Source of the DNA: Octopus bimaculoides
Taxonomy: Eukaryota
Direction: 5' to 3'
Assembly (NCBI RefSeq): GCF_001194135.2
Contig: NC_068987.1
Coordinates: 54,008,196-54,072,195, forward strand
DNA: 64,000 bases
The notes under the pieces are model-generated. The model saw nothing but the letters and a program-made list of their open reading frames with translations. It was not told the DNA's origin and made no database searches. Position 1 is the stretch's first letter; the number at the start of each line of letters is the position of its first letter. Shown piece by piece: positions 44,301 to 53,300 of the stretch. The position numbers and the translations under genes were made by a program.

Positions 44301-47300
44301 TAACAATGCATTCCAGGAGACTACTTTGATATTCAATGAGGTCTTTTTATACTAAAGACTGCAGGGACATTCCATAGAGATAGGAAATGAGAGGTCGACA
44401 TAAATAATAAAAAAAAACATTTGAAAATAAATCGTCAGGATCGCCATTTATATAACACGCTTTGAGCAAGCAAATATGAAAACGATTTTTGAAGAAAAGA
44501 TGCTTCAGTGCTGAAAGTTTCGGGATTAGCATTCCTAGATGTGGAAAAGATAATCAGGTCAAACGAAAGTTTAAAACAAAAGATTTTTTTAATGAAATAG
44601 AGGAGAAAAATAAATTAAGACGAAAAGAAGATAGGATTCACAAAAAGAATTAATCCTATTTAATGAGTTGATGTTACAAAGGAAAGGAAAATATCTTAAA
44701 GGGAAATATTGTAAAAGCTATTTATGTATCATATTTAACGCATGTACACCATTAACAGGCATCAGGCTGTGGTTTTGTCTGGTAGAAAATCACTTCACAG
44801 ATATGTTGTGTTAAAAACACAATAAATATTGGGGTGAACCGAACATTTTCAGCAACTCACAGGAACGCCAAACGCTTTACACTCTTCTTGGGAGCTTGTC
44901 AATGGCGTGTACTTTCCCATCGCTACGGAATTTGTAGTCAATAAAATTGTAGAGACTTCAACTGAGAGACGAAACCGCGCACACATTTTACGTACTTAGA
45001 ATTTATATTAAATGATATTCTTCTCTATTTTTCTTAATTAAATTTGTTTTCCATCACAATTCCTGATATAAAAATATTAGCAGAGCCGAATGTTGTTTCA
45101 AGTTACGATAAGGTTTCAGTACATTGGGAAGCTGCTACAATAATCTTGGCTATGAAGTTGTTGCTGAGCCACAAATTATATTTGATTGAAAAGACTTGTG
45201 ATGAAAACTGAAGTTCCCAACGTAACCATCCCGTCGTTTTTCTTTATCAGAGACTGCGTTATCCAATATATATCCTTTATTAAACAAATGAGAATGTAAT
45301 CTGAAGAATATTAGGTTATTATTTCTAATAAGTAGAGCGGCCAAATAGAAGTTTACTAGACGGTTAATGCTTGTGCAATTGAGGTCAAATACGTGATGAG
45401 AGTGAATCGAGGATCACTAAATGGAAAATGGTTGTAGAATTGGAAAGGAACTTAAAAGAATGGTCTGGTGTGATGGTGGGGGAATATAAAACAAAAATAG
45501 TGAAAAGCAGGATAACACAGCGTTTCAGGAAAAAAAACCGATAGACTAAAATAAATGCAATAAGTTTCGAAAAATCTTACACCGGAGCAGGAGGTTCCAC
45601 AACAGTCTCTCTGTATTAAAATCAAAACACATATTTAAAATTTTACATAAATGTATAAATACACACACACACACACACACACTCTCTCTCTCTCTCGTTG
45701 TTTGCTTCTCTTGGGCTTTATTGCAGAATTCAACAGGCTGATAGCAACCTTCGTGATTAACCGTAATTCAAGAAATTATTTAGCAGAGTATGTTCTAGAA
45801 TTTTCTTTCAAATGCAAAGCGACTACAAGCAACTCTTGTTTATTTCTGCAGTAATAGACTAAAAGCAAATAATTCATTTTGCTGTAATAGTGATGTTGAT
45901 TCAGCCCATCATTGGATCTACAGCATTGTTATAACCTTTTACTTTATGAGCTGAGATTTATCTCAGTCCCAAGTCGGTCCTGATAGAAAATTGCATTCCA
46001 AACGTAGCTTTTTTATATCAAGGAACATATCATCTCATATATCCTTTATTTAAGAAGTTAGGAATTAATTTAAAGGATATTAAATTGCTTTTTTTAACAG
46101 GTCGAGTGACAAAGTAAAGTCTGGTGGTTAATGTTTGTGCAAAGAAAACTTGGCAACAGTTGTCTTGAGAATTTAACCCAGCTGAAGCCAATTATGTGAC
46201 AGAAGGGAACTATGGGGTCACCAAGTGAGGAAAATGGTTGTGGAGTTGGAAAGGAATTTAAATGAGTGATCTGATGAGGGTGGGAAATTAAAAGCAAGAA
46301 TAGTGAAAAGCAGGAGAAGATAAGGTGTTTCAGGAAAAAAAGAGTAGATTAAAAAATAGTGCAGTTAAGTTTCAAAAAATCTTACATCGGAGTATGTTCC
46401 TCGACAGTTTCTCTGTATTAAAATCAAAACAAATACTTAAAATGTTGTACAAATATACATATATATATATACGTACATATACATAAGTGCTCATCGTGCA
46501 TTTAGAAATGCAGACACACACACATATATACAAATATACACAAAAACATACAGATGTAATATATACCACATTGAAAATACTACCACTGTTGTCTAATAAC
46601 AAGACTCACCTCTATAAATACTGATTTTAATCATTTCAAATGTACTCTGAAATAATTTTTACCGTTATTAATAATTTTCTTAAATCTAATTACTTATAAC
46701 AATATATTACAGGGGCTTGTACCATCAATCCTAAAATAGTTTTTAAAAAACACTTGGAATAAGTCAAACAACTTAGTCTAACAACATCAAACAAGCAATA
46801 CATGAATTTATTACAAAATTATTGAAGTCTTAAAACTAACAAATTTTTATCTATTTAGTTAGATTTTTTACTTGCTATCTTCAATTTAAACCAATATAGT
46901 AACAGAAGAAACAAAAATAAACGTGAACAAAATGTACATCATTGAGTGAACAGTAATTCATTTATTCCTTGGAACAGTTCTGTTCCCTCAATAACTTAAA
47001 AGCTACAAAAGAATTTTTGAAAAGCACACGTGTGAGTGGGTGAGTCTATGTGAAGCTATGTATATGCTCCCGTTTTGGAGGCATCAGCTTTTACGCCTAG
47101 GTAATTTACAGATGCTTAACTACAATAAAATCTTACAATACAAATAAAGCGAAAAGTTAAACAGTATAATGGAGTAATAATTCATATAAACTGAAAAACA
47201 ATGATAATAGGAAGGAGAAGGAGGAGGAGGATCACCATCATGCTATTTACGGGAACTGGCAAAGTTGCTTAAAAGAATTACATTTAAATCATAAATTTTT

Positions 47301-50300: not shown

Positions 50301-53300
50301 GGTTTCCTTAATAAGTTAAAAAGGAGAAAGATTAAGAAAGCAGATGTTACTGAAAGAGATATATTTGATCTGAAAAAGGTAGAACAAGTTTACTTCGACT
50401 AACAGACTCACTATGTTTCAACTAAACAAAAACAAAACAAATGTTCAAAGGAAAATATTGATGCTGTTAACTTACATCTGGCTAGTCTCTTCGGTTGATT
50501 GCCTGAATAGCAAAAACAAAATATTCTTAGCAATAATCCAAATTGCTCAACACCATGGTTAATGATATTACATCCATATATCAAAAGCAAACAAAAAAAA
50601 AATTATAAATATATATAAAATTTTATTTCTCGTCTTGTTTTCTTTTTTTATGATAAAGAAAAAGAATTAATTTCTTTCGGTCATGCGCAAAAGCAGTTAA
50701 GAGCTAAGAACACTTAGAAATTTCACACATTTTTGTTATAGTTGCTAAATTTGAAATAAAAACTTTTAACGACACCAAGAGTGGTGAGTAATACAGCAGA
50801 CGGGAACGCTAATTGCAAACTCGTTTGATTCAAACTTATTAGATTTGAAACAATCGTCTTTACCTTATAAAATTCACTTTCATGAAATATCTTAATCCGA
50901 TAGGAAAAGCTATGCGGATCTATTTTTTGAGACAGCAGAATTTGTACGTATTCACATCATTGACAATATCAATACTTTAGTCCATCAGAAGGAAATTCTT
51001 TGTAATATTTGTTTTGCCTAAGATGTACAAACAATACTTTGTCACTACTGCCGTTTAAAATTGAATGAACATATACTTGCGGCTTTCTGAAAAACCTACA
51101 ACAAATATCGCTACTGTCCAAAAAATTCTTGATAAAAAATTTTATAAAATAGAATAAGCATTGATCCGGAATTTTTCCAGAATCTTATCAGGCATTCGAC
51201 TATCGTCTTAATCTGAGAGACGGATTTGTTTTAACTTCTTATTTACGATGAAAATTAAATATGTTCTAGGATTGCAAAAGCAAACCAAATTAAGATATAG
51301 GAGACATCTATCATGGAAATTGATGCTTCCAGTTTGTTCACTTTAGTATGTAATCAAAAGTTTGGATACTCATTTCTGTTTTCTTTGGCGAAAACAAATG
51401 TTTGGTTGCTTAATGTTTTAAAGTTTAAATAAAAATATGTCCATTTTGTCAAACGTATTTTGTAAATACTTTACGATAAAAGAATTCTTGTATTGATATT
51501 TTTTGGATGGAAATATCGGTATACAGTTTAATTTCATTGTTTATTTGCATTATGTTCTCTTTTCACTGGAGCTGAGATTGACAGTTCACCTTCTTGACTA
51601 AAAAGATACTTATCAGATGTTTATGTTAACATAAGGCTCTCACATAATGTCCGCTTGAAAAAGCATCTAGAATTCAATAGTCGGCATATAGATCGAGTTT
51701 TAATCTCAGTTGTTATTGATCTAGCCGTTACTACCCCATTTTATTTCCAGGTAGTAAATATATATATATATATATATATATATATATATATAAACTTAAT
51801 CAATGTGTCCTTTCTTTTTCAAGATGGTAATGTGGATTTGGCTGTCATTACAGGAAGAAGAAACGAAACTATTTCATCGTATTTCAGTGTTAAAGAATCT
51901 AATCACTGTGATTATAAATGCAAGGACAAACTAATTGAACAAATAAAATATTACACGATCGGCTCAAATATCAATCCACAGATAATATTTTTTTCAGATA
52001 CAGCAAAGGAAGTTTGCAAAACAGCTTCAATTAAATACGAGTTTCAATGTAACATTGATGAAGGAACATGAATAAAGTAAATTCCTCAACCCTTTGATTT
52101 CAATATATGCCGCTATGGTTTAACCCCACTTCAGTCCTGACCACTCTACCTTTTTTCTCAGATATAGTGTATTTAAGACTATATTTTAAGCTGCCAGGAA
52201 GAGTCACAAAAAAATTTCTTGCCATTTTTAGCCAATCGCGTGACTACAGAGAAGTTATTTGTGTTGCTGCAGAGGTGTCGTTACTATGCGTTTAATTGTT
52301 TAAAAAAGCATTGGTTTACAACAAGCAAGGTACAGCAAACTAAATTTGAAGTTAATAAAGAAAAGCTGCTGCCGAGTAAATGTTGCTGGAATAGGGAAGT
52401 CAAAATATTAAGATTTGATAAATTGATTATTACCAACTGAATACCTTTAATTTTGAAATATTTTGTAGCGATCGGGAATAGATTTACTTAGTGTCAAAAG
52501 AATTTTAAAATACCATAATGCCTTTACGTATACCGTTTCCATATCTCAGTACTTCGTATCTTGCTCTGCACATTGAGCGTAACCAGATTTTAACTGGTCG
52601 ATCTCAACTTCTACGATCAATTTTATGTTATTAATGATTATTGCTGAAAGAATTACCGATGGATATATGCAAATATCCATTTTTTCTTTACTGTTTTTTA
52701 GGGTTTTTTTCTTCTTTTTGTTGTGGGTGTTATATTTAAAACCTAAAGATACTGCAACATCGATATGTTACAACAAACCAAAAATGTGCCTCTTTACTCT
52801 TCTCTAGCAGTAAAAGAGCAAATTGTTTCATTTGCATTGCAAAAGTATGAAAGATATTCCTGTTTACTCAGACAAGAAGCAGTTTAATCCTTTAAAGAGA
52901 TAAAATCACTTTCAGATTCAAATTGGCTGTGCTTGAATAAAACTATGTCACAAAAGAAGCCGATCGAAAACTTCATACGCTCGGCCTAAACGTGATCAGT
53001 TAATTTTTCTTCTTAAAGATTCGAGGCACTTGAAATATATTGTCCAGATATTAAAGAAACTGTTTGATTATTTAAGAATGATCTGGTTGGAGACACAAGC
53101 TATTAGATATAGAAATGAAATTATTTTAAAATAGGCATCAGTCATTTTGTGGGCTTCTAATGATATTAACGTAATTATATTTCGCTAAAATAATTCTCGC
53201 TTGGATTCTAATGATTCATTTATGCATTTTAAAGTAGAATTACCAGACTAAACCTCTTAAAACACCCGTTAGTATCTTCCTAATACCAGTAACAGAATAA

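Follow-up and report, generated by a model that had tools for sequence, protein, structure and literature searches.

How does a troponin T (TnT) gene lengthen the disordered N-terminal tail of its product? The question is raised by a locus of Octopus bimaculoides that lies within a stretch of 64,000 nucleotides (assembly GCF_001194135.2, contig NC_068987.1, positions 54,008,196 to 54,072,195), hereafter called the window, to which all coordinates refer. The gene is on the minus strand of the window and, judged by its sequence, is a TnT gene. Between its ATG exon at 57.6 kb and its first conserved exon at 33.7 kb lies a stretch of 24 kb with a series of microexons of 15-30 nt. Three of these, designated A1, A2 and A3, sit in intron blocks that can be aligned with one another. 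We read the locus as a TnT microexon array that has grown by tandem duplication of microexon-bearing intron blocks, and we give this reading a probability of roughly 0.8. If so, the locus shows a repeat-containing disordered tail growing microexon by microexon, and the growth is legible in the DNA because the intron blocks are still alignable.

Three microexons in homologous intron units

Reading of the region from 44 to 51 kb, together with a scan of the minus strand for open segments bounded by AG and GT, yields three short segments. A3 (49638-49667, minus strand, 30 nt) consists of AGAAACTGTGGAGGAACCTGCTGCTCCGAT, flanked by aatacag and gtaagatt, and comprises one nucleotide, the peptide ETVEEPAAP and two further nucleotides (A, GAA ACT GTG GAG GAA CCT GCT GCT CCG, AT). 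Within the same flanking motifs, A1 (45581-45610, minus strand, 30 nt; AGAGACTGTTGTGGAACCTCCTGCTCCGGT) encodes ETVVEPPAP, and A2 (46386-46412, minus strand, 27 nt; AGAAACTGTCGAGGAACATACTCCGAT), which is the most diverged copy, encodes ETVEEHTP. The three are 78-89% identical and have a common 1 + 2 split of the codon. Their lengths of 27-30 nt place them among microexons, which published abstracts delimit either strictly (≤ 30 nt) or broadly (≤ 51 nt). Each adds 9-10 residues and 2-3 negative charges to the product.

The initial annotation had placed three exons at one position inside homologous intron units, with both splice sites kept and a single codon as the sole length difference, and had counted 25 of 30 identical bases between the copies at 49638 and 45581 (A3 and A1). 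Alignment of the units bears out this description in full. The exons fall in the same alignment columns (BLAST E 6e-119 to 2e-48 for the surrounding blocks), all three retain an AG acceptor and a GTAAG donor, the length difference is one 3-nt gap, and the count of 25 identical bases is reproduced.

Extent and anatomy of the duplicated blocks

To find homology, the region was compared with the whole window, first by BLAST and then in more sensitive comparisons. The most significant pair joins 45114-45674 with 49150-49731 (75% identity over 605 nt, E 6e-119), followed by 46037-46464 with 49298-49721 (72%, E 9e-60) and 45423-45661 with 46229-46463 (79%, E 2e-48), while the longest joins 46008-47053 with 49267-50368 (64% over 1152 nt). 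Outside these, further pairs are colinear: 43622-43751 with 47188-47314, 44040-44102 with 47645-47707, 44450-44654 with 48266-48470, and 44939-45040 with 48528-48622. Local-alignment scores of the A-unit blocks lie far above those of shuffled sequences (z 76-135). The A exons are thus same-phase homologous neighbours whose homology runs on into the introns, in BLAST blocks of 240-1150 nt, as is characteristic of tandemly duplicated exons, and these block lengths agree with the earlier description of shared sequence running from hundreds of base pairs to over 1 kb.

The copies all have the same orientation and are arranged head-to-tail, so that the proposed local segmental duplication of microexon-bearing intron blocks stands. 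Its outline requires two corrections. The region given at first, 44470-50320, is confirmed, but the true homologous span is somewhat larger, 43622-50368. Moreover, the layout is not one of three equivalent units but of two large tandem units and one internal copy of ~0.8 kb. The first large unit, UI (43622-47187), holds A1 and A2, and the second, UII (47188-50368), which begins where UI ends, holds A3; both are delimited by the colinear BLAST blocks. The unit size is ~3.3-3.6 kb, and the match at the boundary (47188-47314 with 43622-43751) has a z of 20. UI holds two microexons because a core segment of ~0.8 kb is present twice within it (45232-45681 and 46003-46483). One duplication of ~3.3-3.6 kb would thus have given rise to UI and UII, and one of ~0.8 kb inside UI would have supplied the extra core.

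The spacer at 45763-45858 matches UII at 48973-49070 (z 5.8), from which it follows that the second core starts right after the microsatellite closing the first. The position of the core 1/core 2 junction in this microsatellite suggests slippage or unequal exchange at the repeat. A different placement of the spacer 45700-46005, as an upstream flank of A1 homologous to those called R2 and R3, was tried and rejected (z 0.4-0.9).

We found neither a third large unit past 50368 nor a duplicate of microexon B1 (see below) at the UI/UII junction, and an nhmmer profile of the unit detected no copy beyond the three in the 64-kb window. The duplicated region contains no N gaps, and an assembly artefact is ruled out because the copies diverge by 18-34%.

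Constraint on the splice neighbourhood

The three-way alignment allows for a comparison of constraint in different parts of the unit. Among the 40 columns that directly flank the exon, 20 intron bases before it and 20 after it, 35 (88%) are invariant (binomial P 1.9e-7), as compared with 21 of 30 (70%; p = 0.02 versus background) in the exon and 208 of 434 (48%) in the rest of the unit. The comparison of exon and flank divergence, which the initial annotation had suggested as a check, therefore gives a divided answer: the exons are better conserved than the distant flanks but less well than the 20 intron bases next to them at both ends. The individual copies can be followed in their private changes. 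A2 carries one such change in 36 splice-proximal intron positions against 100 of 308 (32%) elsewhere (P 1.3e-5), and A1 carries none in 35 against 56 of 264 (21%; P 2e-4).

The further claim that selection had acted on the reading frame is not borne out. It rests on one 3-nt indel in the exon, for which the chance expectation is ~0.28; this is weak evidence because the alignment has 18 gap runs in intron sequence, of which 5 (28%) also have lengths that are multiples of three. The frame gains slight support from one Val codon, the third position of which is G, C and T across the three copies. Detectable selection appears to act on the splice signals rather than on the frame. After copying, the AG, the GTAAG and ~20 intron bases on each side stayed nearly constant, and drift affected the exon sequence and the remainder of the unit. 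What selection preserves first is the neighbourhood of the splice signals and not the coding bases. Conserved splice-proximal intron around a short, fast-evolving exon is the pattern that regulated cassette exons coding for a disordered tail should show.

Phase and composition of the putative exons

Several features indicate that the three A segments are very probably exons. The first coding exon (57601-57647, minus strand; ATG at 57620 in the context CCAGCCATGG) encodes MDEEDH and leaves two bases of a codon over at its end; exon F (33682-33721, minus strand, 40 nt), consisting of one nucleotide (A) followed by SFEGADEAKVKME, starts with one codon base. Any insert between them must therefore be a multiple of three and open in a single phase, and A1, A2 and A3 all have this phase. 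Since the microexons are all multiples of three with the 1 nt/2 nt split, any subset can be spliced in without a change of frame; for nine microexons (eight and the weaker ESPASGF), all 512 in/out combinations stay open.

The same exons are recovered by a blind scan for segments of 9-99 nt that are bounded as AG...GT[AG]AG, have a length divisible by three, are open, contain at least 20% Asp/Glu and lack C, W, F, Y, L, M, K and R. It returned eight matches, all of which lie between the ATG exon and exon F, have the sense orientation and read in the required phase: EEQT, QSTEETSQ, the three A exons, ETTEIPSN, DTTEDPST and STGGDEGTG. No match was obtained in the other two phases or antisense in this 5' region, and the control region of 1-19 kb gave one 4-residue match over both strands and all phases. 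The modules of the array are acidic, free of basic and bulky hydrophobic residues, and mostly of the form E-T-x-E-E-P-x-x-P.

The phase of the insertion site is shared with a bivalve. At the TnT locus of Mytilus edulis (L001), two bases of a codon are likewise left at the end of the first coding exon, and the homologue of exon F starts with one (A + PENEAKLAME) and ends with ATGGAG|gtaagt; both its phase and its end are those of exon F. The 4-kb intron between these Mytilus exons contains a single candidate microexon, of 18 nt and encoding EETQE, which resembles microexon D of the octopus; the long array in the octopus is therefore an expansion relative to that bivalve. The Mytilus candidate lies at L001 10885-10902 (plus strand; T GAA GAA ACT CAA GAA GT) and is absent from the deposited 222-aa product.

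Relationship among the copies

The order of events can be approached through the distances among the copies. On 529 shared columns, the Kimura two-parameter distance is 0.21 for A1-A3, 0.45 for A2-A1 and 0.47 for A2-A3, and 115 grouping sites favour A1 + A3, as against 37 and 31 for the alternatives. The closest copies, A1 at 45.6 kb and A3 at 49.6 kb, are thus non-adjacent, and the middle copy, A2, is the outlier. The A1-A3 identity reaches 85-94% from ~40 nt upstream to ~340 nt downstream of the exon and is ~70% in the outer blocks, a level equal to that of A2 versus either copy and of the upstream flanks R2-R3.

A large duplication followed by a young internal copy predicts A1 and A2 to be closest and is rejected by these distances. 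The closeness of the non-neighbours A1 and A3 requires either later gene conversion or duplication of a two-copy block with subsequent loss. With three copies and no outgroup, two histories would fit the facts. In one, the large duplication was followed by the internal duplication and then by gene conversion of ~420 nt between A1 and A3. In the other, an older two-core unit was duplicated as a block, after which one core was lost in UII.

Weighing of alternative explanations

Some of the observations weigh against a microexon array grown by tandem duplication. The exon is not better conserved than its surroundings, as A1 and A3 agree in 25 of 30 exon bases versus 34 of 36 and 78 of 83 in the next 140 intron bases, and three of their five exon differences alter the protein (two are synonymous). 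With its purine/A-rich tract ttgattttaatacag, the acceptor of the A exons is weaker than the acceptors of the constitutive exons. Search of protein databases found no transcript, no protein derived from expressed sequence tags and no close ortholog, and a 92-aa N-terminal query that included the three A microexons had no database match. Finally, uniqueness of the unit is established only within the 64 kb. The weak acceptor, together with the non-consensus last base of the exon (T), would fit a regulated rather than a constitutive use of these exons.

The absence of splicing evidence from transcripts or proteins in the database searches leaves some room for the view that the duplications are real while at least one copy is an unspliced relic, a pseudo-exon; the array would then present three apparent exons of which a single one is in use. 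In favour of this, A2 has a branch ~3.4 times longer than that of A1 or A3, lost one codon and gained His and Thr; besides, the exon sequence evolves about as fast as the nearby intron. We consider a relic improbable. A2 has a single private change in its 36 splice-proximal positions against 32% elsewhere, A1 has none in 35 against 21%, and the AG, the GTAAG, the open frame and a length divisible by three are kept in all three copies. By a rough estimate from the branch lengths, neutral retention of the seven core splice bases in all three copies has a probability of ~2%. A dispersed repeat or transposable element that carries an exon-like motif by chance and was inserted three times would account for the duplicates in another way. 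The region is rich in repeats and microsatellites, and a decayed reverse-transcriptase fragment is found elsewhere in the window. The copies, though, all point the same way and keep their colinearity through several distinct blocks, the large units meet head-to-tail at 47187/47188, and the nhmmer profile detected no further copy in 64 kb. The units contain no open reading frame of ≥ 90 aa, and no terminal inverted repeats were found around them besides microsatellite matches; within the 64 kb there are thus no dispersed copies, terminal repeats or coding capacity of the kind that marks a transposable element. Moreover, the TnT exons around the motif require one particular phase, strand and composition, and the motif has all three. 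Two exact-pattern scans of metagenome contigs for copies or orthologues in DNA (one with exon end and donor flank, the other with two invariant intron elements) gave no matches, which is a weak test. Insertion of a mobile repeat is, in our estimate, extremely improbable.

The close similarity of A1 and A3 allows for yet another explanation, namely shared purifying selection on ~400 nt of intronic splicing regulators instead of conversion or recent copying. It would account for the 85-94% identity from -40 to ~ +340 around the exon next to ~70% in the outer colinear blocks, and several intron elements are indeed invariant in all three copies. Within the same 400 nt, however, A1 and A3 differ by large indels of 39 and 11 nt, and A2 is just 69-77% identical in the tract, which is hard to square with strong constraint on its whole length; a conversion tract of ~400 nt, on the other hand, is ordinary. 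Because the tract carries these indels and is not conserved in A2, constraint alone is the less likely explanation, and we regard it as unlikely, though less so than a relic exon. For the array grown by tandem duplication, a gene conversion of ~420 nt between A1 and A3, or duplication of a two-core block followed by loss of one core, would account for the closeness of these non-neighbours.

Intron elements and RNA pairing

Downstream of each A exon the intron contains the elements GTAAGATTTTTCGAAACTT, TTTTTTTCCTGAAAC and TCCTGCTTTTCACTATT, located at 45496-45580 for A1, 46299-46385 for A2 and 49556-49637 for A3 (minus strand). Between the three units they agree exactly or with one mismatch, and each occurs three times on the minus strand of the 64 kb, besides weak mismatched matches. 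Upstream, every A core has a microsatellite of the GA/GU/UA type 50-200 nt before the acceptor. In the case of A1 this is a (GA)n(GU)n tract in the pre-mRNA (45650-45700), which is situated 50-90 nt upstream of the acceptor and at the junction of core 1 and core 2, and equivalent UA/UG-rich tracts are present at ~46455-46560 for A2 and 49745-49870 for A3. We infer that splicing regulators may bind to the UG/UA-rich microsatellites and to the invariant elements downstream of the exons. The A exons would be spliced, probably as cassette exons, and their inclusion would be controlled via these conserved elements and the UG-rich tracts.

Within the intron that separates A3 from A2, the downstream element recurs in a partly inverted copy at 47556-47665 (minus strand). 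This segment, 47665-47556, is the best predicted partner of all three downstream elements, with dG of -43 to -46 kcal/mol (z -3.1 to -3.8); it is ~4 kcal/mol ahead of the runner-up among ~1000 windows, which is not clearly above background. One could imagine the A exons as a regulated choice set, in which the UUUUUUUCCUGAAAC...UCCUGCUUUUCACUAUU element, 40-90 nt downstream of each exon, would pair with 47665-47556, and competition for this single site would settle which copies are included, in the manner of the docking and selector sequences of Dscam but in a lophotrochozoan muscle gene, with A1/A3 gene conversion keeping the selectors matched. We consider such a mechanism, modelled on the predicted pairing, highly doubtful. 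A scan of the whole window with Rfam gave no match at the gathering threshold.

Comparison with known troponin T genes

The closest known case is the avian fast TnT gene, TNNT3, with up to seven lineage-specific P exons that form tandem repeats (the Tx segment) and undergo muscle-specific splicing (PMC11016001; PMC7581897). There, too, each exon is one short acidic repeat, and the P exons are spliced in as added length and negative charge in particular muscles (PMC11016001; PMC7581897). The avian repeat is a metal-binding, His/Glu-rich pentapeptide, AHH[A/E]E, whereas the octopus modules have 8-9 residues, are rich in Glu, Pro, Thr and Val, and contain His in one copy. Splicing in the octopus is predicted from genomic sequence. 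Its intron blocks can still be aligned, and the duplication itself is therefore readable from the DNA.

Human TNNT3 has 5' alternative exons of one phase class, as described in the abstract of PMC2447309. Its exons 4-8 and fetal exon are like the octopus array in being small same-phase 5' exons between constitutive exons, any combination of which is in frame, and in encoding an acidic N-terminal variable region (PMC2447309; PMC11016001). The shared phase in TNNT3 is attributed to exon shuffling, and homology of flanking introns does not appear in the abstract (PMC2447309). In contrast, two sets of exons in the octopus are demonstrably recent paralogues. More generally, alternative same-phase microexons set the length and charge of the TnT N-terminus in vertebrates and insects and thereby modulate troponin function (PMC2447309; PMC11016001; PMC7581897).

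Tandem exon duplication in animal genes is known from Kondrashov and Koonin (2001) and Letunic et al. (2002), as reviewed in PMC9741552. The octopus exons conform to the general picture drawn in the review, in which local duplication yields homologous exons side by side that share their phase and are of the same or nearly the same length (PMC9741552). They differ from it in being additive-compatible repeats in a disordered tail, young, and with intron homology retained. Among invertebrates, the Drosophila TnT gene upheld has tiny alternative 5' exons regulated by Muscleblind (Benoist et al. 1998, as related in a citing paper; PMC2238819). The likeness to the octopus gene lies in the presence of very small 5' exons in an invertebrate TnT gene. 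To our knowledge, no tandem-duplicate relationship has been described among the Drosophila TnT 5' microexons.

We regard the locus as a clear but ordinary example of how TnT genes lengthen their acidic N-terminal tail, which will be no surprise to specialists in TnT or splicing. It differs from the known cases in the different repeat peptide, the lophotrochozoan host, the alignable intron blocks and the nested duplications in which the closest copies are non-adjacent. If the microexons are alternatively spliced, they would provide a graded series of TnT isoforms, with ~10 residues and 2-3 negative charges per step, relevant to the specialisation of muscle types. By analogy with other TnTs, the splicing choice may tune thin-filament regulation in different muscles or stages.

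Identity and body of the troponin T gene

The starting clue for the gene was a set of minus-strand stop-to-stop frames rich in Glu, Lys and Arg, three of which were joined into a 159-aa query. This query, derived from conserved exons, retrieved 24 protein relatives, all 24 of which contain PF00992; the named ones are troponin T or TNNT3, the remainder are uncharacterized, and their sources include Mytilus edulis, Macrostomum, Biomphalaria and Lamellibrachia. The best protein relative of the query shows 62-63% identity, and molluscan TnTs are the best relatives of the gene (58-75%). The assembled 402-aa product scores 44.3 bits against the Pfam Troponin family PF00992 (cutoff 26.2, E 2.7e-11). 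The TnT assignment made in the initial annotation is thus upheld by the family of the relatives, the mapping of exons with tblastn and the Pfam score. That the gene is of T-type rather than I-type is indicated by the tropomyosin-binding central motif KEQLEEEKRAILAQRIQPL and by named TnTs as nearest relatives.

The conserved body, located by tblastn with mollusc TnTs, by splice junctions and by the Pfam match, comprises eight exons at 20164-31019 on the minus strand. These are 31019-30903, 29701-29615, 28885-28736, 26227-26018, 23634-23594, 23263-23219, 21338-21302 and 20388-20164, the last of which holds the stop codon. The exon at 26227-26018 is 72-74% identical to proteins named troponin T or TNNT3. 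Exon F, homologous to the Mytilus exon described above, has a single open frame and joins the exon at 31019 in phase 0. As is typical of TnT, the gene has an acidic, variable N-terminal extension made of small same-phase exons; the variable region amounts to 99 aa with a net charge of -29 if all candidates are included and to 20 aa with a charge of -6 if none is.

The window contains seven assembly gaps, 3044 N in total, which are flanked by microsatellites (5614-6048, 24403-24939, 31714-32557, 58058-58329, 59527-59584, 60108-60924 and 62640-62720). Two of them, at 24.4-24.9 kb and 31.7-32.6 kb, fall in TnT introns, and small exons could hide there.

Further microexons of the N-terminal region

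Two other microexons form a pair of their own. B2 (41435-41461, minus strand, 27 nt, ETTEIPSN) and B3 (40544-40570, minus strand, 27 nt, DTTEDPST) are located in the blocks 41234-41565 and 40356-40672, which are ~890 nt apart and 63% identical over 344 nt (z 16); the exons agree in 21 of 27 bases by hand count. On the strength of these alignments, B2 and B3 are taken to be a second, older tandem duplication of a microexon with its intron block. B1 (50476-50502, minus strand, 27 nt, QSTEETSQ) has CAACCGAAGA in common with B3 and in register, and its flanks show no detectable homology. Microexon D (56133-56147, minus strand, 15 nt, EEQT) has strong splice sites. The uncertain candidate E (53613-53636, minus strand, 24 nt, ESPASGF) is in the right phase and lies between good splice sites, but its peptide includes Phe and did not pass the composition filter. 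Candidate C (36518-36547, minus strand, 30 nt, STGGDEGTG) comes from the blind scan. Downstream of it, at the same distance as in the A units, 36436-36452 is a weak match to the A-unit element, with three mismatches, and is not significant.

The six A and B peptides can be described by the pattern [E/D/Q]-[T/S]-[T/V]-E-x-..., and the N-terminal region as a whole looks like successive generations of one module. At the DNA level only the A1-A3 and B2-B3 families are statistically secure; homology among the units of B1, C, D, E and F, and of these with A, is not significant, save for a marginal match between A1 and F. The latter is at 33130-33265 (minus strand), ~420-550 nt downstream of exon F, and pairs this intron segment with the part of the A unit that corresponds to it in position (nhmmer E 0.014; z 4.1); it could be a very old relative of the A unit or due to chance. 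One gene would hence contain duplications of at least three ages. In the A family, identity is 66-82% for the core blocks and 64-75% for the colinear blocks farther out; the flanks of the B pair are 63% identical; and older modules are alike only at the level of exon or peptide.

Other features of the window

At 11843-12157 (plus strand), clear of the coding exons mapped for TnT, the last of which reaches to 20164, there is a fragment of an open reading frame with the reverse-transcriptase motif FMDD. It scores 23 bits against Pfam RVT_1, below the cutoff of 29.6, and represents a decayed retroelement. The open frames for poly-Asp/Glu at 9758-9907 and 13514-13663 (plus strand) arise from trinucleotide repeats of the GAT/GAC type and are probably simple repeats rather than coding sequence.

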